Source of the DNA: Scyliorhinus canicula
Taxonomy: Eukaryota
DNA length: 64,000 nucleotides
Direction: 5' to 3'
Assembly (NCBI RefSeq): GCF_902713615.1
Contig: NC_052155.1
Coordinates: 163,531,828 to 163,595,827 of the forward strand
Shown: in pieces, positions 32,761 to 59,460 of the stretch
Layout: each line of letters begins with the position of its first letter
How positions within the stretch are numbered: the first letter of the stretch is position 1
The notes under the pieces: model-generated
Seen by the model: the letters and a program-made list of their open reading frames with translations, nothing else
Databases searched by the model: none
Told to the model about the DNA's origin: nothing
Translations under genes and position numbers: made by a program

Positions 32761-32978
32761 NNNNNNNNNNNNNNNNNNNNNNNNNNNNNNNNNNNNNNNN
32801 NNNNNNNNNNNNNNNNNNNNNNNNNNNNNNNNNNNNNNNNNNNNNNNNNNNNNNNNNNNNNNNNNNNNNNNNNNNNNNNNNNNNNNNNNNNNNNNNNNNN
32901 NNNNNNNNNNNNNNNNNNNNNNNNNNNNNNNNNNNNNNNNNNNNNNNNNNNNNNNNNNNNNNNNNNNNNNNNNNNNNN
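32761..32978. other. Assembly gap (N run)
   Basis: 218 N. Confidence 1.
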
Positions 32979-41098: not shown

Positions 41099-41327
41099 AT
41101 TTACTTGAGATTTCTTGACTACGAGATGCAGAATTCAAATGAGTGTAAGCGCAATTTTGTGGCAATCTATGATGGAAGCAATGCGGTGGAGGACCTTAAA
41201 GCCAAATTCTGCAGCACGGTGGCCAACGACTTGATGCTTCGCACAGGGTTAGGCGTCATTCGCATGTGGGCTGATGAAGGGAGTCGGAGCAGTCACTTCC
41301 AGATGCTTTTCACCTCCTTTCAAGAAC
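41099..41327 (+). CDS. NETO1: Internal coding exon of neuropilin and tolloid-like protein 1 (C-terminal part of the second CUB domain)
   Basis: Polypyrimidine tract + AG acceptor (ttctctcccattag, ends 41098) and GT donor (gtaagc, 41328). Translates [76 protein letters not shown]. As I recall the human proteins, DYEMQN, RTGLG and [10 protein letters not shown] match NETO1 rather than NETO2 (DYQMEH, KTGIG, FRMLFTSFVE). No other NETO1 exon recognised in the window. Confidence 0.95.
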
Positions 41328-45815: not shown

Positions 45816-48800
45816 TTTCACATTCACATATGGTGAGACATCATAGCCTCAGAGGGTTCTGTACCTGGATCAGTCATTTGGTAGCCAGCAATGACCTCCT
45901 GCAGGAGCCTTAATCATTGTGATGGCTCACTGGGGGAGGAGCAGGAGGTAAGACAGGACGAGGAATTGGAGGCGGAAGTAGATGATGTTGAACAGAGACG
46001 TGGCACCACTACATTGTGGGGTGTCTTTCTCTTGCCACCTTATGGGATGAGGACTTTCCCCCTCTCGCTGATGGCTGCCAGGCTTCTCGCGCTGCTGTGA
46101 CTTTGCGCTTTCTTCTTGAGCAGTGTAAGTCGAGGCATAAATTCCCTCCCTCAACAGCCTCAGTGTTGGGCTGCCTTGGTTTTCTGAAACCAAACCACAC
46201 CTGCCCCTATCAGCTTTAATTGGGCAGGAAAAATGTCCCCTTGGACTCACCTCCGGGAGAATCTGAATTCGAATCAGTTTTCCACCAGCGATGAGTTTCT
46301 GACACAAAAACAGCCTTGGTTTCTGTTACCCCCACCCCTTGTAGCAAAGATCCAACCCCAGGATAAATGGAGAGAGACAGCTGGGACTGAAGTTGGGGCC
46401 AGATGAATGAAGTGTATGAGAAGTTGATAAAAATGTTTTGTGGATGGCTGTACAGAACATTGGAAGCGTGTGCTAAAGGATGAAGGAGAGCAGGGAGGCT
46501 GTATAAGTTCAAGACGAGGATGGAAGAGAGCAGCAAAAGACAGTGGTAGAATTGGGCAGAGGGTGAAGAGAGTACTCAACTAAGAGAAAAGTAGTTAAAG
46601 TCCACAAGCGGTTGGGAGAGAGGAGACAGTACAAAAGTTGAGAGTCACATCCTGTAAGGAACAGGAAAAGACAACTGAAGTCAGAAGGAAAAGCAGCATA
46701 TGGTAGTATTGAAATCAGTAAAGAGAATTAATGTATTTGTTTCCTGTGATGATTGTCCCTTTAAGGGCCACACAGCAGAGTAAGGGTCACATGGCCTATG
46801 CAACCAATCGACCAATGGAGTGTGGAATCATCCCATGGTGAGAAGGCCCTGAGGCAGATACATTTTGGGAACTAGCTGCTAACATGAGGTTCTGTTCAAA
46901 TCACACCAATAAATAAGTTTTGTGTTTATTAATGAAGTGCATGATTCTCCAGCCTTGTTTTCATCTCGCTCAAGCGTAACAAAGCCAGTGAATAGCGGGA
47001 GAAGCCAAAAATGAGATCCGCGACAGGCGATGTAGCTGGCCTGCTCCCAAAGGCGAAATCGGGCTCTCGCTGTAGCATGGTGAGAAACCAGTTATCACCA
47101 CTTAAGCCCCATTTCCATACAACTAACGAGAGTGACCCCATATCCAAAGGTCTCACTTCATTCAGCAGCCTCCCCAACAAGTGGTCATGCTGGCGTCGAT
47201 TAGTACTCCTTTTGAAAAACGTGATCCGATTGGAAGGGCTTCAGTGGACCGAGGAGGTGAGTAGGCATCTTTGCTCACAAGCAAAGAACCTGGGGGTGCT
47301 GGGCTTTCCAACCCAGTGCTTAGTGGAGGGTGGGAGAACCGTCCGCAAGGGTGGGCCACCATAGAGGGGGTGTGGGGGATGCCTGGAGAGATGGGCAAAG
47401 GGTCCGGGGGTTGGCCCGCATTCTGGAAGGAAGTGACACAGGCATTATAATGGTTTTGCAAAAAGGTGTTTAATGTGTTGTACAAGCCCCACTTGTGATG
47501 TTGTCACGCTGTCCCATGTGCTGACTGCAAGATGCAACCTCATCAGAGGAGTGGAACACGTGGGAGCTGGTGGCCAACATCCCCGGTCCCTGGGACGTGT
47601 CCGGCCTGGCACCCAGCACCTCCTCCTCCCGATCGGTGCCCTTAGGGCCCTGGGGTCCACCTTGGGATGGAGGGACAGCTGGTTTGAGCACTTGCTGCCC
47701 CTGCATCACCTGGCTCTGCCAGTCCTGCACCATGTGTCGACACACTCGGCAATGCTCCTCAGGAACTGGGTCATGCTCTGCGGTGCCTCAGCCATGCCCA
47801 CCTGCGACTGGGACGAGCTCCGCAGCACCTCGGGCTATGCCCATCTGAGAGCAGGACATGTCCTGCAGAACCTCAATGTCGGCCTGGTACTGGGTCACAT
47901 CCCCCAGCGAGTCGGATATCCAGCCGAGATCCTCAGCCACGGCCATCACCGACTGCGCGATGCCTTTGACACCTTCACTCATGCTGTCAATTTTGTGCAC
48001 CAGGCTTTGCACTGAGGTCGCCACCATAGCAGTGTTGGCCTTTGTGCCACTCATTTCCAGAACCATCTCCTGTTCCCCTAGCCTCTGGGACTCCTCCAAG
48101 CGGCTATGGATCTGCTGTAGTGATGCTCACATCTCCCTTTAAAGGACAATGTTGGTCACTATCATCACCATCAACTCTGGGTACCGCCGTACCACAGGCT
48201 CAGCATCATCCTGGAACCCAGCTGGGTCCAGGGATCCAGCAGACCTCCGACTGCTGTCTCGCCTGGGGGTTCCTGCCTCCACTTGATGTACATCAGCAGC
48301 AGTGTGATGCTCACCAGATTGTGTCCCAGAAGGCTGACCACTAACATTTGCGCCCCGAGGTGTGTGTATCTGCGCTGGTGGAGGATGGGGATGACAGCTC
48401 CTCGGAGGTGGTCTCCTCGGAGTCAGGAGAGGGGGGGCCACCCGGGATGGACCAGCGCCATCGGCTGGAGGATCTGCAGGAGAATGGACATCTGGTCAGT
48501 GGGACGGATGAGTCGGTCAGTAAGTCAATCACTACTCATGTTTGACAGGTCCTCCAGCTGGAGCCGGTGATTCCTAACCTCTGTGGCATCCGACAACCTC
48601 CCCATGACTGACCGATCTGTCCTCGACCAGCCCGGTCACCTCCAGGGCCTGCTCCTCGAAGGAGGTAAGGATTCCTAAGTCCGGCAACACTCAGCTAGCC
48701 TGTGCCCTATCACTATGTATAAGGGAGAGCTTTTTCTGAGGAGTCACAGAGAGGGCATTGTGAGACGGGTTTGGTACGTTTCGGCGTAGCTGATTCGGCG

Positions 48801-48907
48801 TGGCCGATTCGGCGTCAGGGAAATAATTGGACTATTCGGCGCAGCCGTTTAGGCGCCAGGACATTTTGACGTCATCCCATTGACAATCTGTACTCTGCCA
48901 GACAAAA

Positions 48908-49498
48908 ATGCTGACTGAATTGTTTGTCGCTGTTTCTTTGGATTCTGCTCAATGAGGGTCTTCTAACACCTCTGGAATCATTGTCACCGAGGAGTTCAGC
49001 ACACACAGGCAGTGACAACATAATTGAGCTTTCAGGGGATGGAGTTCTGAAACTCCAACGCGTTCGGCGTGGCTGGATCTGGAACCAGTTCTTCGTCCTG
49101 GAGGAATATAGAACATAGAACATAGAACAGTACAGCACAGAACAGGCCCTTCGGCCCTCGATGTTGTGCCGAGCAATGATCACCCTACTCAAACCCACAT
49201 ATCCACCCTATACCCGTAACCCAACAACCCCCCCTTGACCTTACTTTTTAGGACACTACGGGCAATTTATCATGGCCAATCCACCTAACCCGCACATCTT
49301 TGGACTGTGGGAGGAAACCGGAGCACCCGGAGGAAACCCACACACACACGGGGAGGACGTGCAGACTCCACACAGACAGTGACCCAGCCGGGAATCGAAC
49401 CTGGGACCCTGGAGCTGTGAAGCATTTATGCTAACCACCATGCTACCGTGCTGCCCCTATGGGAATATATAGGGTCAGAACCTCAGTATGTGGGAGAG
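48908..49498 (+). pseudogene. CDH12: Captured first coding exon of a type II cadherin (CDH12-like), frameshifted and split by a SINE
   Basis: MLT-(frameshift)-NCLSLFLWILLNEGLLTPL...[19 protein letters not shown][SINE 49111-49461, 8-bp TSD GGAATATA][10 protein letters not shown], then GTAAAA donor at 49499. Matches my recollection of the CDH12 N-terminus ([23 protein letters not shown]...[28 protein letters not shown]). Followed by AT-rich intron-like DNA to about 49980. Confidence 0.85.
49111..49461 (-). mobile_element. Young HE1-type SINE inside the captured CDH12 exon
   Basis: Full head and core, (TTCTATG)n tail, 8-bp TSD GGAATATA; tail nearly identical to the insert at 9859-9980. Confidence 0.92.
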
Positions 49499-51344
49499 GT
49501 AAAATACATTACTGCTACCCGATAGAATTATCATAATTTGACAAAGATCTTTGAGTTTATGAAATTAGTAACATTTGATAAAAATGTTTCTCATATTTGA
49601 TTAACATAACTTTTAATTTAGATCTTTGCTAATTATTGTGTGGAAAATTTGAAACCAGCTAATTTCATCATATGTATTATTTAGAAGAGGGAAAAGCATG
49701 TTACTCCACCTGACACCACATCGAACCAGTTGCTGCAATTAATTCACTACCCTCACACAGCATCTGGAATTCTTATAAATCTTCTCAATAGCTGCAACCA
49801 TCCTTGCTGGGATGCATATGGAAAGACCTTTCCAAAGTAAGCTCTGATGTAACCTATAAATATCTTGGTGAAGTCAATAAAGTTGTTGGCAAGGGAATGC
49901 ATGGTGCTCTTAGAAGTTTTCAATAATGTGCCATTGTGTAAAATTCTGCTTGGCACAAGCGCGTTTTGGTCTGAAGCCTTAAAAACATTTGACGCCGAAA
50001 CGTCCCTCTGCCGAAAAATTCCTCCGTAGAATCGGCTACACCAAATGGGCCACGCCGAACTGGCCACGCCGAACTGGCCACGCCGGAACGTCCCATTCCC
50101 TTGTGAGACACACATGTGGTGGGAGGTGTGAGGGAGGGGTTAGGGTTGAGGAAGGGCTGGAGAGTTCACATGGCGATTTGGGGGGTGGATGCTCTTTTGC
50201 GCAGGGTGCGGAGGGGGGTCTGGGGGCTTTGATGTCTACTCACTCGTGCTACCCGGTGTAGCTCGTTGACCTTTTTCCAGCACTGAAGGCCAGTACTCCT
50301 GGTCACATTCCCCGAGCTGACAGCTGCCGCCACCTCATCCAGGCAGCACTGGCTGACTTGTGGCTGACTCTACAGGGCCCTCGGGGGAACAGGACATCCC
50401 TCCTGGCCTCCACCCCATCTGGGGCCTCGCCAGGTCAGCATCTCCGAATCTTGGGGCCGGCCTCCTGGGCGCCTTGGGCGCGATTCTCTGCTCCAGCGGC
50501 AGAGTGTCGGCTCCGGCGTCAAAACGGGAGTGTTTCACTCAGTGGTCAGCGCTCGTTCCGGGACCCCATTCTGCGCTGTACAAGAGGCTAGCAGAGGTGC
50601 GGCGGGGGGCGTGGCAGGAGGCATGGAGACGCGGTGTCATGCAATCGACACAATGCCTCGTCGCACATAAGGTGACGCAAACGTACAGGCTGCCGATGGA
50701 GCAACATGGCGCCACACCGAGCAGCGCCCCAGTTCATCGACCACGACCTGGAGACGCTCCTGGACGCCCTCGAGGAGAGGAGGAGGTGTCTGTACCCTGG
50801 ACCCAGCCAGAGGGTCCCACCCAACGTGGCCCAGCGTCTGTGGAGGGAGGTGGGCACGGCCGTCAGTGCCATTGCGTTGACACCCAGGACTGGCGAGCAG
50901 TGTCGCAAGAAGCTCAGCGACCTACTGAGGGCAGCCGGGGTGAGTACCCAGCAATGTGCCCATGGCTCCAACCCACCTACACCACACATCTGTGACACCC
51001 ACCCCCTCCCTAGGGGACGGTACAACCACAGCCGTGACCCGCATGGCTGCAGCCACCTATGCAAGCCGCGTTGGCCGTGTGTCCTGTGCACCCATGCCAA
51101 CATAGATCCAGCCGCATGCATCGGACCACCTAACAATGCTGTCATTCCCCCCCCCCCCCTCCCCCAGGAGAAGAGGGCCCATAACCAACGGGAGCGAGCC
51201 CGAACCGGAGGGGGTGAACCTGATTTGCGACCCCTCACCGTGCACGAGCTGAAGGCACTGGGCATAGCTAGTTCACCCAAGGACCGGGAGATTGCCCATG
51301 CCGAGATGGGGTTGCGCCACCAAGTGAGATCCCCCCCCCGGCCT

Positions 51345-52060
51345 GGCCCCTTTCCCCTCAGCAGTCTCTCCTCAGCACACTATCCCCAGCACTCTCCCCT
51401 CAGGACTCTCCCCTCAGCACTCTGCCCTCAGCTCTTTCCCCTCAACCCTTTCCCCTCAGCCCTTTCCCCTCAGCACTCTCCCCTCAGCACTCTCCCCTCA
51501 TTCCTTTCCCCTCAGCACTCTCCCCTCATCCCTCTCCCCTCAGCACTCTCCCCTCAGCACTCTGCCCTCAGCTCTTTCCCCTCAACCCTTTCCCCTCAGC
51601 CCTTTCCCCTCAGCACTCTCCCCTCAGCACTCTCCCCTCATTCCTTTCCCCTCAGCACTCTCCCCTCAGCACTCTCCCCTCAGCACTCTCCCCTCAGCTC
51701 TTTCCCCTCAACCCTTTCCCCTCAGCCCTTTCCCCTCAGCACTCTCCCCTCAACACTCTCCCCTCAGCACTCTCCCCTCATTCCTTTCCCCTCAGCACTC
51801 TCCCCTCAGCCCTCTCCCCTCAGCACTCTCCCCTCAGCACTCTGCCCTCAGCTCTTTCCCCTCAACCCTTTCCCCTCAGCCCTTTCCCCTCAGCACTCTC
51901 CCCTCAGCACTCTCCCCTCATTCCTTTCCCCTCAGCCCTTTCCCCTCAGCACTCTCCCCTCAGCACTCTCCCCTCAGCACTCTCCCCTCTTCCTTTCCCC
52001 TCAGCATTCTCCCCTCAGCTCTTTTCCCTCAACCCTTTCCCCTCAGCACTCCCCCTCACC
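51345..52060. repeat. 14-bp pyrimidine-rich minisatellite (CCCCTCAGCACTCT)n, apparently within a Harbinger Myb intron
   Basis: About 50 tandem units, directly visible. Confidence 0.95.
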
Positions 52061-52319
52061 CTTTACCGCGACCCACAGCCCCCTCCACCTGCCTAACCAT
52101 GATGGTGTATTGTGTGTCGCAGGGCCATGCGGTGACCAACGTGGAGCACCTGGCAGATACCGCCCGCATCCAGCGCCTGGACGGCAAGCCGACGCAAATC
52201 AACCAGGCGCATCAGGCTTACACCGCCCCCGGCCAGCGCCTGAACGGCCAGCCCACAGGGACTCTAGCAGCGATGGGGTGGGCAGCTCCAACAACAGCCC
52301 TCCAGCCCAGTTCAATGAC

Positions 52320-52590
52320 AACACGATGACCCAGGACACCAGCACACAGGGGACAGTCAAGCACGACACGACAACACAGGACACAAGCACACAGGGGACA
52401 GACAGACATGACACGACGACACAGGACACAAATACACAGGGACAGACAGGCACGACATGACAACACAGGACACAAGCACACAGGGAACAGACAGGCACGA
52501 CACGACGATACAGGACACTAGCACACAGGGCACAGACAGGCACGACACGACGACACAGGACATGAGCACAGAGGGCACAGACAGACATGA
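52320..52590. repeat. 39-bp tandem repeat (13-aa unit TTTQDTSTQGTDRHD-like)
   Basis: About 6-7 units visible. Confidence 0.85.
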
Positions 52591-53850
52591 AAGAACGCAA
52601 CGCAACACCACCATGGAGGGGATGGACATACAGGACATGGCACCCCAGGGGACCCCCCCACTACAGGTCCGATGAAGACACTGAGGTTGCGTCACAGCTG
52701 TCCCCTGCACCATCCGCCACCGCAGATACTCTCACCTCGGTTGGCCATTTTATTGGTGAGGCTTCTGGGACACTAACTGGTGCACACCACACAGCCGCTC
52801 CGGTACAGCAGGTGGAGGTAGGAGCAGCCGAGGGGCCGGACGGTCAGAGGGCAGCCCAGCCCCGGCAAACACCTGCCACCCAGACGGGTCCCGGGTTCCT
52901 GGAATTCCCCCGCCCACCTATAGACCCGATGCAGTCAGGGACCCAGGGGCGTGAGAAGGTGACGGCCAGTTTCCAGCACCTGCAGACACAAGTGCAGGAG
53001 TGCATCTGCGTCCAGGAGCAGGAAATGGTGCCAGTCATGAGTGCCACACGGGCGAGCACCGCATGGGCGGCATCCGCAGTGGAAACAATGGTGGCGACGG
53101 TGTCGGGCATGCGACTGAGTTAGCGGGACCTAGTGCTATCTGTGCACGCGGCCTCCGCGGCCCAGGACAGGGCTGCTGACTCACAGGCAGCCATGAGCCA
53201 GGGCCAGTTGAACATCGCAGAGGCGCTCAACAACTTGGCACGGTCTCAGCAGACCATCGCTGAGAGCATCAGCGCCATTTTGTGGGTGATTGCCGGCGTT
53301 ATACAGAACCAGACAGGGATGGTGAACTCCCTGAGCTCCATGGCTGCGAACGTCCAGACCCTGGTCGATACCAGCATGGGCCTCCAGGACTGGCAGCGCC
53401 AGGTGATGCCGGTGCCCCAGGTGCTGGATCCACTCGCACCCCCATCCCACGGAGAGCTCCAGGGGCCACCAGGCACCCCGGGGGCGGGGGGGGTGGGGGG
53501 GGGGGTGGGGAGAGGAGAAGCTGGGGAGGTGCCAGAACCCTGCACCACCTCGGACTCCCCTCCCCCCCCACACCCGCCATCCCTGGTGCATCTGGTGGGC
53601 AGCGGGCAGAACAGGGTGGCACCACGCCACCCCAATTGCCCGAGGTTCAGCCTGGCCCATCCAGGCCAGGCCGCCCCAGGAAATAGCTGCCAAAGGGGAC
53701 CCTTGTCACAGGGCAGGAATCAGATTAGTCCACCTCCAGTTCTGCTGTACCGTCTGGGGGAACACTGAGACATAATCATAGGGCCCATAAGGCCAGAAAG
53801 GTAGACACGGATGAGTAAGTTGGCACGGGTGCAGGGCACAGAATAGTTAA

Positions 53851-55454: not shown

Positions 55455-58400
55455 AAAAGTCTATCTATTGGATTGGCTTAGTGAACTTAAAGACAGTGAG
55501 GGATGAGCATATCGTGGTTGCTTTTCAGGTGTGGTATTCCAGTTTAAGTAGGGAGTGTGTTGTGGACAATGGCTCTTCCAGAGGCTGTGAAGTTTTTGGG
55601 GGTGGAGACGGTCATACGTAATACCTTACGGACAGAGACCAAAAGCAGACTGTTAGATTTGGCAAAAACATTGCAGTTAACTTTACCTGACAAAATGCGA
55701 AAAAGATGAGGTAATTATGGCGGTGGCTAAGCATTTAAGGTTGCAGAAGGTACAGTTTGAATCATTGGAAATGGCAAAAATTCAGTTACAAATGAAACAA
55801 ATGGAACATGAGAAAGAATTAAAGCAGCTTGAAAACGAAACTGAGAGGGAGGAAAAATATAGAGAGATATAGAGGAAAAAGAAGAGCGATAGAGAGGACA
55901 AGGAAAAGGAGAGAGAAGAAAGGAGAAAAGAAAGAATAGCCCTAGTAGAACAAAAATAAAGAGAAAGGGAGATACAGGTCAGGGAAAAAGATAAATAATA
56001 AGGGGAGTGTACCTCAGACTAAAAAAGAAATCCAGGATAGTGGAAAAGACATGAAAAGTTTCTAATGTTTTCACTGTAATAAACTAGGCCATGTAAAGTC
56101 ACAGTGTTGGTGGTTGAAGAAATGCACTGGGAAGTCTGATGTGGTAAAACAGGATAAGACAGTGGGGTTTGTTAAGTGGGAAAGGAAAGCCCAAGGAAAA
56201 TGAAGGAGGTGCAAAAGATTGTACAACTTGAACAAGAGGTGATTGATAAGAAGGTGCCAGATGTCTTTAAAGAATTTACTTGTGTGGGTAAAGTTTACTC
56301 ATGATATTAGGAGGAGCAGGTAAAGAAGTCACAATTTTAAGAGATAAGGGAGCTGGTCAATCTTTAATGGTAAGAGATGAGGAGTAATGTAGTTTGGGAA
56401 GAATATTGCCAGAAAAGGTGGTAATATGTGGAATTCAGGGTGAGAGAAGTAGTGTTCCATTACATAAGGTAAGGTTGGAAAGTCCAGTGAAGAGTGGTGA
56501 AGTGGTAGTAGGAGTAATAGAGAAACGATCTTGTCCAGGAATACAGTTTATCTTGTGTAATGATATAACTGGATCGCAGGTGGGAGTGATGCCTACTGTG
56601 GTTGATAAGCCAGTGGAAAATCAGACAACTGAAGCGTTGAAGGACGAATTTTCTATGATTTTTACAGATTGTGCAGTAACAAGGTCGCAAAGTCACTTGT
56701 TAAGACAAGAGAAGAAATCAAAGAGTGAAAATGAAGTTGAAGTGCCATTATCAGAAATTATTTTTGATCAGATCGTTGAAGAAGAACAAGAACAGGTGGA
56801 GGATGAGGTGGATATTTTTAGTTCAGAAAAATTGCCAGTTACAACATAAATATGTAGTAATAAAATGGATATATCAGAAAACATATACGGAAGAGAAATC
56901 TTGAGTGTATACCGGAGTGTTATTACTGTAAAAGTGATGTCTTGAGAAAATGGAGACCTTTACATATGCAGGCGGATGAAAAGTGGGCAGAAGTTCATCA
57001 AGTAGTATTGCCGGAAGGGTATAGAAAGGAGGAGTTGCGAGTTGCACATGAGGTACCAGTGGGAGGTCATTTGGAAACAAGGAAAACTCAAGCTAAGATC
57101 CAGAAACATTTTTATTGGCCTGGAATACATAAAGATGCAGTTAAATTTTGTCAATCATGTCACATATGTCAAGTGATAGGGAAACCTCAAGTAGTGATAA
57201 AACCAGCACCCTTAATACCTATTCCAGCATTTGAGGAACCTTTTTAAAGTGTCCTAATTGAATGTGTAGGACCGCTTCCTAAAACAAAAAGTGGGAATCA
57301 ATATCTTTTGACGATAATGGATGTGTCGACTAGGTTTCCAGAGGCCATTCCAGTACATAATGTTACAGCTAAAAAGATTGTGGAGGAGTTACTTATATTC
57401 TTTACTAGATATGGACTACCCTCAGAAATACAATCAGATCAAGAATCAAATTTTACCTCAAGGTTATTCAAAGAAGTTATGGATAGTTTAGGAAGAAAAC
57501 AATTTAAATCAACTGCGTACCATCCAGAATCGCAGGGAGCGTTAGAAAGAGATTCCCTGTGCTATCAGTGGTAGGTGAACCTTTAAAAGCAAGGTTTTCT
57601 AGACCTTATCAGATTGAAAGGTAATTAAGTGAGGTGAATTATGTGGTAAAAACACCAGATAGAAGGAAGACTCATCGAGTGTGTCATGAGGATATGCTTA
57701 AAAGGTACTTTGAAAGGGAAGGAGAGAAAATGGAGGAGACTCTAATGATTCTAACTCAAAGTGACGAACCAAATCCAGATGACTGTGAATTTGACATACC
57801 TTAAATTAAATTGGAAAGTGAGGATATTCTTAAAAATTGGGATAAATAGTTGAGTTACCTTCCAGAGGAAAAACGGACTGACCTGAAATGAAGTACTAAA
57901 ATGGTTATACATGATATAGATGTGGGAAATGCTGTTCCAATCAAACAACATCCATACAGACTTAGCTCTTTAAAATTGGCACAAGTTAACAAAGAGATTG
58001 AGAGTCTGCTTAAAAATGGCATAATTGAAGTGGGTTGCTGCCAATGGTGCTCACCCATAGTGATGGTACCTAAACCGGACGGTACCCAATGGTTTTGTGT
58101 GGACTATAGAAAGGTTAATGCAGTTACAAGAACGGACCCGTATTCTATTTCACATTTGGAGGATTGCATTGAGAAAGTGGGACAGTCAGCTTTTATTACC
58201 AAACTGGATTTAATTAAATGTTACTGGCAGGTACCTTTATCCGAAAGGGCGAAGGAGATTTCAGTTTTTGTGTCTCCAGATGGTACACACCAATTCAAAG
58301 TCATGCCATTTAGCATGAAAAATGCCCACATTTCAACGGTTAACTAACAAAGTCGTTTCAAGATTACCCAATTGTGCGGTATACATCGACGATCTGGTAA

Positions 58401-59460
58401 TCTTCAGCCAGAGAGGGAAAGAACATGTAAAACATCTGATTGAGTTATTCGATCGACTTCAGGAGGCGGGTTTGGTGGTAAATCTAACCAAAAATGAATT
58501 TGGAAAAGCCCAAGTCACCTTCCTTGGCCATACAAATGGGCAGGGTCAAATGGTCACATGGGATGTGAAGACAACAGTTATTGAGGAGTTTCCAATACCC
58601 TCGACACGAAGGGAAATAATGCGATTTCTTGGCATGAGTGGATTTGATCGAACTTTTGTGCAAAATGTTAGGAGCGTGGTTGCTCCACTGATGGACGTGC
58701 TGAAGAAACATTGAAAATTACAGTGGACAGCGGAGTTTCAACAGGCATTTGACTGCCTGAAAGCTGTGATAACCAATGCTCCTGTGTTGGAGAATTACAA
58801 GGGACCCTGTGATCAGATTGAACTAAAATATCTGACTTTAAAGAGAAATGCCGAGGCGTAGAGAAATGGACGGATCGTGCAGAGACCTTCTTGTTCAAAG
58901 AGACTATCAATCAAGAGGGTTTCCAGTTGGAGGAGGAACAAAAAGGGACTATATAATTGTACCTGTTTGCATGTGCTTTTTGAAACGAAAAACTATATTT
59001 ACTGTGTGTGTTTCTTAAAGGATAGTGAAAAGGTGATAAATGAAACCATCTTGAAGTTGATGGGTTTTTTTTCTTGGGTGGAGTTGCCATGTGAGAGTAC
59101 CTTTAAAAAATGGGTGTTTATTACTGCAGTGTTGTCAGAGAGTGGGTGGAGCTGGGCTGACTCTGCTTTACTTTCGTTTTTGAGCAGGCTGCTATAGAGT
59201 GAAGTTTTAATTTTGTTTTCAGAGAGCAGAGCTGCAGTGAAAGCCAGCAGATGTGCATGGATCTCTCTACAAGCTAAAGAGTGTTCATTTGGGTGATTTC
59301 AAATGAGTAACTGCTCTCATTAGAGAATTTAAACCTGATCTCTATTAAAAGGGTCTTTTGTCTTCTGGATGTTGTTTGGGAATTTATTAAGGATTACTTA
59401 GTGTTGTATTTTTTTGGGGTTGTATTTGAATTGATGGTTGCTCAGATGTTCACTGTATGT

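Follow-up and report, generated by a model that had tools for sequence, protein, structure and literature searches.

A 1334-bp unit at positions 48767-50100 of a 64-kb window of the Scyliorhinus canicula genome (the window being the whole stretch of DNA that was analysed) consists of a DNA transposon and, inside it, a copy of an exon from the cadherin-12 gene, CDH12. The best explanation of the whole, and one that we consider probable, is a decayed Pack-type element, that is, a non-autonomous DNA transposon carrying a genomic CDH12 fragment. The arrangement by which Pack-TIRs and Pack-MULEs (elements that carry gene fragments between terminal inverted repeats (TIRs), the latter being Mutator-like elements, or MULEs) are recognized was found here. 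TIRs and a target site duplication (TSD) enclose the host CDH12 exon together with its splice sites, and the open reading frames (ORFs) of the interior contain no Pfam domain. The coordinates of the features are collected in Table 1.

The limits of the unit are set by an exact 9-bp repeat, both copies of which directly abut the outer ends of the inverted arms. The arms are 49 nt each and 80% complementary, and they run from GGG to CCC. Their significance was taken from a window-wide blastn self-comparison, in which the inverted match by itself had an E value of 3e-6; the exact 9-mer at a fixed adjoining position contributes a further factor of 4^-9 (about 4e-6). A chance arrangement is therefore excluded. 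According to Tandem Repeats Finder, each arm has a period of 14 bp; the left one holds 2.6 copies (90%) and the right one 2.7 copies (100%). The subrepeat core TTCGGCGTGGCC, with at most one mismatch, occurred five times in the 64-kb window as compared with 0.23 expected, and all five occurrences were within the unit. The carrier is a non-autonomous TIR transposon with a 9-bp TSD.

The original prediction, which was made on the same DNA, had described a 1334-bp unit with a perfect 9-bp TSD and with G-initiated imperfect TIRs made of 14-bp subrepeats. The unit and its duplication were found as described. For the TIRs, the description holds for the outer 49 nt, where the 14-bp period is clear, and less so for the inner stretches that had been counted with them (48816-48870 and 49985-50051). 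In these stretches the subrepeats are degenerate and the similarity is at the limit of significance (P about 0.06 in inverted and 0.04 in direct orientation), which places the inner ends of the carrier and the breakpoints of the cargo no closer than 48816-48891 on the left and roughly 49960-50051 on the right. A search for duplicated carrier sequence at the two cargo junctions returned no more than a weak similarity, direct at P 0.04 and inverted at P 0.06. The direct similarity, ACATTT(T)GACG...TC.CCC, lies at the inner borders of the carrier (48861-48878 versus 49985-50008, P about 0.04), and it might be a short template-switch duplication or another degenerate module.

The identity of the cargo was established by homology. 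An ORF of 64 residues at 48924-49115 matched 45 proteins at E <=0.001 among 1.84 billion representatives. The best match, P0001, showed 84% identity (E 1.6e-26). P0001 is itself a 92-residue ORF that begins with MLT..., continues through a pro-peptide to RVRR and a further 23 residues, and then runs into an intron. It is encoded on L001, a Logan contig of 2606 bp from run SRR089296, on which a bona fide CDH12-type first coding exon of a distant relative occupies 662-897 and is flanked by introns. The closest named relatives of P0001 are short N-terminal fragments that their sources call Cadherin-12, from Myotis brandtii, Apodemus speciosus and Nibea albiflora, and in the alignment these fragments share both its start and its exon end. 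In the PDB, the mature N-terminus matches type II cadherins, cadherin-7 being the best match (E 1.5e-9), and no match there is named cadherin-12. The hallmarks of the first coding exon of CDH12 are all present, namely a signal peptide beginning MLT..., a pro-peptide with a furin site, the GW(V/I)... start of the mature chain and the same exon end. The terminus reads GE before the gt of the donor in the window copy and GK before gt in the relatives. A search with the short ORF for homologues in the protein collection found no CDH12 exon copy closer than P0001 and its contig.

At the DNA level, the window copy is 82.8% identical to L001 over 48892-49110 and 93% identical over 49463-49506. The alignment starts about ten bases upstream of the AG acceptor, where the intron ends in ..ACTCTGCCAG and the exon starts with an A at 48902, and it extends eight bases beyond the GT donor at 49499 (GAG followed by gtaaaata). 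Acceptor and donor flank the pseudo-exon exactly as they do in L001. These alignments show the cargo to be the CDH12 first coding exon with its two splice sites. Since the exon is flanked by retained intron sequence at either end, it was copied from genomic DNA, not from complementary DNA. The original prediction of a CDH12-like exon for signal peptide and pro-peptide, taken from genomic DNA and followed by a GT donor at 49499, is borne out by the match to P0001, its named relatives and the type II cadherins, and by the acceptor and donor with adjoining intron bases, which are homologous to those of the L001 exon.

The 486 bp that follow the exon, counted from the donor, have a guanine-plus-cytosine (GC) fraction of 0.25-0.41 and are non-coding. 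About 480 bp of this DNA are presumed to be CDH12 intron. A Pfam search of the interior ORFs gave no domain in any of them, hence no transposase domain, and the largest interior ORF showed low protein-likeness in Atlas. The AT-rich character of the DNA after the exon and an interior free of transposase had both been predicted. A stretch of higher GC on the minus strand, 49756-49980, was considered as a second coding cargo or as a relic of a transposase and was rejected, its best Pfam E value being 0.12 and its recognition in Atlas low.

The exon copy carries several lesions. As compared with L001, a 2-bp deletion after position 48915 puts the ATG at 48908 out of frame with the remainder of the exon, and the last codon has changed from Lys to Glu. 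A short interspersed element (SINE) is inserted in the exon, flanked by an 8-bp duplication, GGAATATA, at 49103-49110 and 49462-49469. Once the SINE is taken out together with one of the two duplication copies, a stretch of 14 residues is restored that is colinear with the relative's sequence. A CDH12 exon interrupted by a SINE could not function, and the SINE was therefore inserted after the capture. The exon copy is dead and is decaying without constraint. That the cargo is the real CDH12 exon in its own gene was ruled out by the frameshift, the SINE and the NETO-family exon upstream.

This upstream exon identifies the family of the host gene. It is intact, and it resembles residues 219-294 of NETO2 (PDB 7f56 chain E, E 1e-40). 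The transposon lies 7.4 kb downstream of it, in sense orientation. The exon at 41099-41326 is the sole host-gene exon located in the window, and since no NETO exon turned up further downstream there, the transposon is assigned to the intron after the CUB2 exon. The peptide of the exon fits, exactly or nearly, short peptide strings of NETO1, and it fits them better than it fits the NETO2 sequence in the PDB. Of the predicted location in a NETO1 intron in sense orientation, the NETO family and the orientation are established by the CUB exon on the same strand, and NETO1 itself is likely. Within the intron, the transposon is nested in an older GC-rich repeat of about 5.9 kb (47600-53500).

How did a CDH12 exon come to be inside a transposon in a NETO-family gene? 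In the course that we propose, a short non-autonomous cut-and-paste DNA transposon would have inserted into the older GC-rich repeat in the intron, producing the 9-bp duplication. About 760 bp of its interior would derive from the genomic CDH12 locus, reaching from the last part of the upstream intron across the first coding exon and its donor into non-coding DNA downstream. The cargo may have been gained by a template switch of DNA synthesis, either at a stalled fork or while a break within the element was being repaired. Neutral decay would have followed, leaving the 2-bp frameshift, Glu instead of Lys at the last codon and an inserted SINE.

From the 9-bp duplication it is certain that the carrier arrived here by transposition, but not that the exon travelled along with it. 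We lean slightly towards capture in place over the arrival of a loaded element because of the published base rate in animal Pack-TIRs (PMC8277862). Tan et al. (2021, PMC8277862) reported 370 Pack-TIRs in 100 animal genomes, nearly all of them hAT or Tc/mariner elements and none of them Mutator. Just 4 (1.4%) were multicopy; the other 98.6% were single-copy and were attributed to gap filling that is independent of transposition. The timing and the microhomology of the animal elements pointed to template switching while a resident element was being repaired. The few multicopy cases, among them the Foldback-based Ssk-FB4 of Drosophila, were attributed to transposition after fork switching (PMC8277862).

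According to the original prediction, by contrast, a copy of an active Mutator family acquired the CDH12 exon elsewhere and carried it here, as part of a system that repeatedly moves host exons and possibly as a multicopy Pack-MULE. We regard this course as possible but doubtful. The perfect 9-bp TSD directly abuts full-length ends, as transposition of a loaded element would have it, but an empty element that was filled later would leave the same TSD. CDH12 and NETO1 presumably lie on different chromosomes in human (5p and 18q, respectively), which would favour movement over local repair. No second copy and no second cargo was found in the 64-kb window, in the metagenome contigs or in the protein collection. 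The Drosophila Ssk-FB4 Pack-MULEs did spread in such a fashion, but they belong to the few multicopy exceptions among animal Pack-TIRs, most of which arose without transposition (PMC8277862).

The class of the carrier can be narrowed by its duplication. Mutator elements have TSDs of 8-11 bp, typically 9 bp (PMC6446971, PMC3169594), and Merlin elements have TSDs of 8 or 9 bp, TIRs of 24-462 bp and conserved 5'-GG termini (PMC8101967). With a TSD of 9 bp, the carrier is therefore essentially either a Mutator or a Merlin element. The exact 9-bp duplication outside both ends agrees with Mutator. The ends also have the composite structure of Foldback/Phantom TIRs, with a 12-nt motif followed by 2.6 (left) and 2.7 (right) subrepeats of 14 bp and by further degenerate units. 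Such an architecture, a short motif with 14-bp tandem units, appears to resemble the Foldback/Phantom type of Mutator most closely. On these grounds we favour, with some reserve, an assignment to the Mutator superfamily.

Several points weigh against reading the unit as an exon-carrying MULE. The terminal arms are only 80% alike, over 49 nt. The DNA after the exon scored 15 against the 1.7-kb intron of L001, where shuffled sequence gave a mean of 13.9, a comparison that is uninformative at 83% exon identity. Other copies of the ends were absent from the 64-kb window, as judged by searches with the motif and the terminal 25-mer with mismatches, by self-BLAST and by an inverted-repeat scan. A scan of metagenome contigs for two tandem subrepeats gave one match, L002, which was rejected as a relative, being a GC-rich bacterial contig with a coincidence of two units. 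Dupeyron et al. doubt the vertebrate MULEs that had previously been reported (PMC6446971). Finally, a 9-bp TSD and GG termini are also what Merlin elements show (PMC8101967), so that Merlin and MULE cannot be told apart by them.

If the carrier were a Merlin-superfamily or another non-Mutator element, it would be a Pack-TIR but not a Pack-MULE. Merlin has been reported in several vertebrates, while vertebrate MULEs are disputed (PMC6446971). Against Merlin stands the structure of the ends, since a short motif with 14-bp tandem subrepeats is a hallmark of Foldback/Phantom MULEs such as Tm1 (PMC3169594), and the word 'subterminal' does not occur in the Merlin paper (PMC8101967). We consider membership in Merlin unlikely.

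Among known systems, the Phantom-subclass Mutator/Foldback element Tm1 of Meloidogyne (PMC3169594) has ends of the same design. Its TIRs consist of a short terminal motif and a variable number of tandem repeats of 13-15 bp, mostly 14 bp, and it shares with the shark element the 9-bp TSDs, the composite TIRs and ends of unequal length; many Tm1 copies are non-autonomous as well. The differences are that a Tm1 copy with FLYWCH and MULE transposase has been identified and 61 copies have been analysed, whereas one copy of the shark element is known, that the subrepeat sequences are unrelated, and that the host of Tm1 is a nematode and not a vertebrate. Ssk-FB4 of Drosophila melanogaster, a Pack-MULE on Foldback FB4 (PMC8277862), shares a Foldback-type carrier without a transposase of its own and an interior made of a host gene fragment, and its TSDs are 9-10 bp. 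It is multicopy with distinct TSDs, expressed and under positive selection, whereas the shark element is a single known copy and is dead. The FB4 TIRs are about 700 bp long, as compared with a clear match of 49 nt in the shark element. Rice Pack-MULEs likewise are flanked by TIRs and 9-bp TSDs, lack a transposase and contain genomic gene fragments including exon-intron structure. They differ in that plants have thousands of them, about a third multicopy, with long MuDR-type TIRs, as against one vertebrate copy with Foldback-like modular ends. The Pack-TIRs of vertebrates (hAT and Tc/mariner, for example hAT-N8_XT with a CAPSL fragment in Xenopus; PMC8277862) are short elements with degenerate TIRs and captured host DNA. 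They are mostly single-copy and often intronic, like the shark element, and differ from it in having 8-bp or TA duplications instead of 9 bp.

New exons and chimeric genes can arise when DNA transposons capture gene fragments. Good documentation of such capture exists for Mutator in plants and, among animals, for hAT and mariner; whether vertebrates have MULEs at all is disputed (PMC6446971). No Pack-MULE was found among the 100 animal reference genomes surveyed, and sharks are not mentioned in the text of that survey (PMC8277862). The kind of capture described here is thus already known, and with this type of transposon it is rarely seen in vertebrates. The shark element is a candidate vertebrate Pack-MULE. 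With Mutator/Foldback hallmarks and a clear host exon, it would be a useful data point provided that the family is confirmed, and it would then give a handle on whether capture in cartilaginous fish depends on transposition.

The captured exon and the carrier share a short sequence. Twelve nucleotides of the exon, GTTCGGCGTGGC at 49062-49073, are identical to the TIR subrepeat core, as seen by comparison with 50049-50074 and 48794-48805. In the exon, these nucleotides encode VRRG and supply the first two bases of a Trp codon, at the furin site. A 12-mer match was attained in 0.5% of dinucleotide shuffles (P about 0.005), and the relative's exon on L001 has 10 of the 12 nucleotides at this site. 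The match fits a simple microhomology breakpoint poorly because it is inside the exon, away from the junctions. It may be an after-the-fact chance, or it may be a clue to why this exon was captured. We give little credence to an extended version of the latter, in which a recently active shark family of the Foldback/Phantom type of Mutator would repeatedly transduplicate host exons and the 12-nt match, as a mimic of a transposase site or as template-switch microhomology, would have selected CDH12. If this were true, it would be the first vertebrate Pack-MULE family.

Could the pseudo-exon be used, either as a cassette exon in NETO transcripts or as a source of RNA that regulates CDH12? It has the orientation of the host gene and lies in the intron that follows the CUB2 exon, it has kept its native acceptor and donor, and according to the animal survey some Pack-TIRs yield chimeric transcripts with host genes (PMC8277862). 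The frameshift and the 351-bp SINE in the copy argue against such use. Inclusion from the phase-1 donor at 41326 would read C+AC AAA AAT GCT GAC TGA, with a stop after five codons, and would destroy the transcript or truncate the protein. We consider use of the pseudo-exon very improbable, and the cargo copy appears to bear no sign of function.

That the arrangement arose by chance, or by a mis-assembly joining CDH12 sequence to the NETO locus, is hardly credible: the region is rich in repeats and a run of N is present elsewhere in the window (32761-32978), but the TIR match with its adjoining 9-mer is far beyond chance, the cargo is symmetrically bracketed by the ends, and private lesions (the 2-bp deletion and the SINE with its TSD) are unexpected in a chimeric join of a real gene.

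Table 1. Features of the element and its host locus, with positions in the 64-kb window
Feature	Position	Strand	Basis or detail
NETO-family exon, intact, C-terminal half of CUB2	41099-41326	+	AG acceptor, phase-1 GT donor; Pfam CUB E 1.2e-5
Left TSD copy, TTGTGAGAC	48758-48766	.	exact 9-bp direct repeat
Left TIR	48767-48815	+	12-nt terminal motif starting GGG, then 14-bp subrepeats TTCGGCGT.GC..
Left subterminal zone, degenerate subrepeats	48816-48870	+	repeat comparison
End of upstream intron, pyrimidine-rich tract and AG acceptor, conserved with L001	48892-48901	+	DNA alignment
CDH12-derived pseudo-exon: short 5' leader, ATG at 48908, signal and pro-peptide, RVRR furin site, first 23 EC1 residues	48902-49498	+	homology
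Secondary SINE insertion (351 bp)	49111-49461	-	(GTTCTAT)n tail faces left, head GGGGCAGCACGG faces right; >15 relatives in window
GT donor at 49499, then AT-rich non-coding DNA, presumed CDH12 intron	49499-49984	+	first 8 nt alone alignable to L001
Right subterminal zone, degenerate subrepeats and inner copy of terminal-like motif at 49992-50006	49985-50051	-	repeat comparison
Right TIR	50052-50100	-	ends CCC; three perfect 14-bp subrepeats
Right TSD copy, TTGTGAGAC	50101-50109	.	exact 9-bp direct repeat

The older GC-rich repeat around the transposon has long, diverged inverted arms of its own, which pair 47612-47727 with 53385-53500 and 48271-48347 with 52747-52823. An ORF of 584 codons in it (50706-52457) encodes a Myb/SANT-like DNA-binding domain, and units of roughly 70 bp form an internal tandem array at 51350-52067. 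The repeat could be a Harbinger-like or other DNA transposon. Elsewhere in the window, there is a run of 218 N at 32761-32978, and two adjacent plus-strand ORFs at 57901-58711 carry the halves of an RVT_1 domain, which indicates a frameshifted retroelement.

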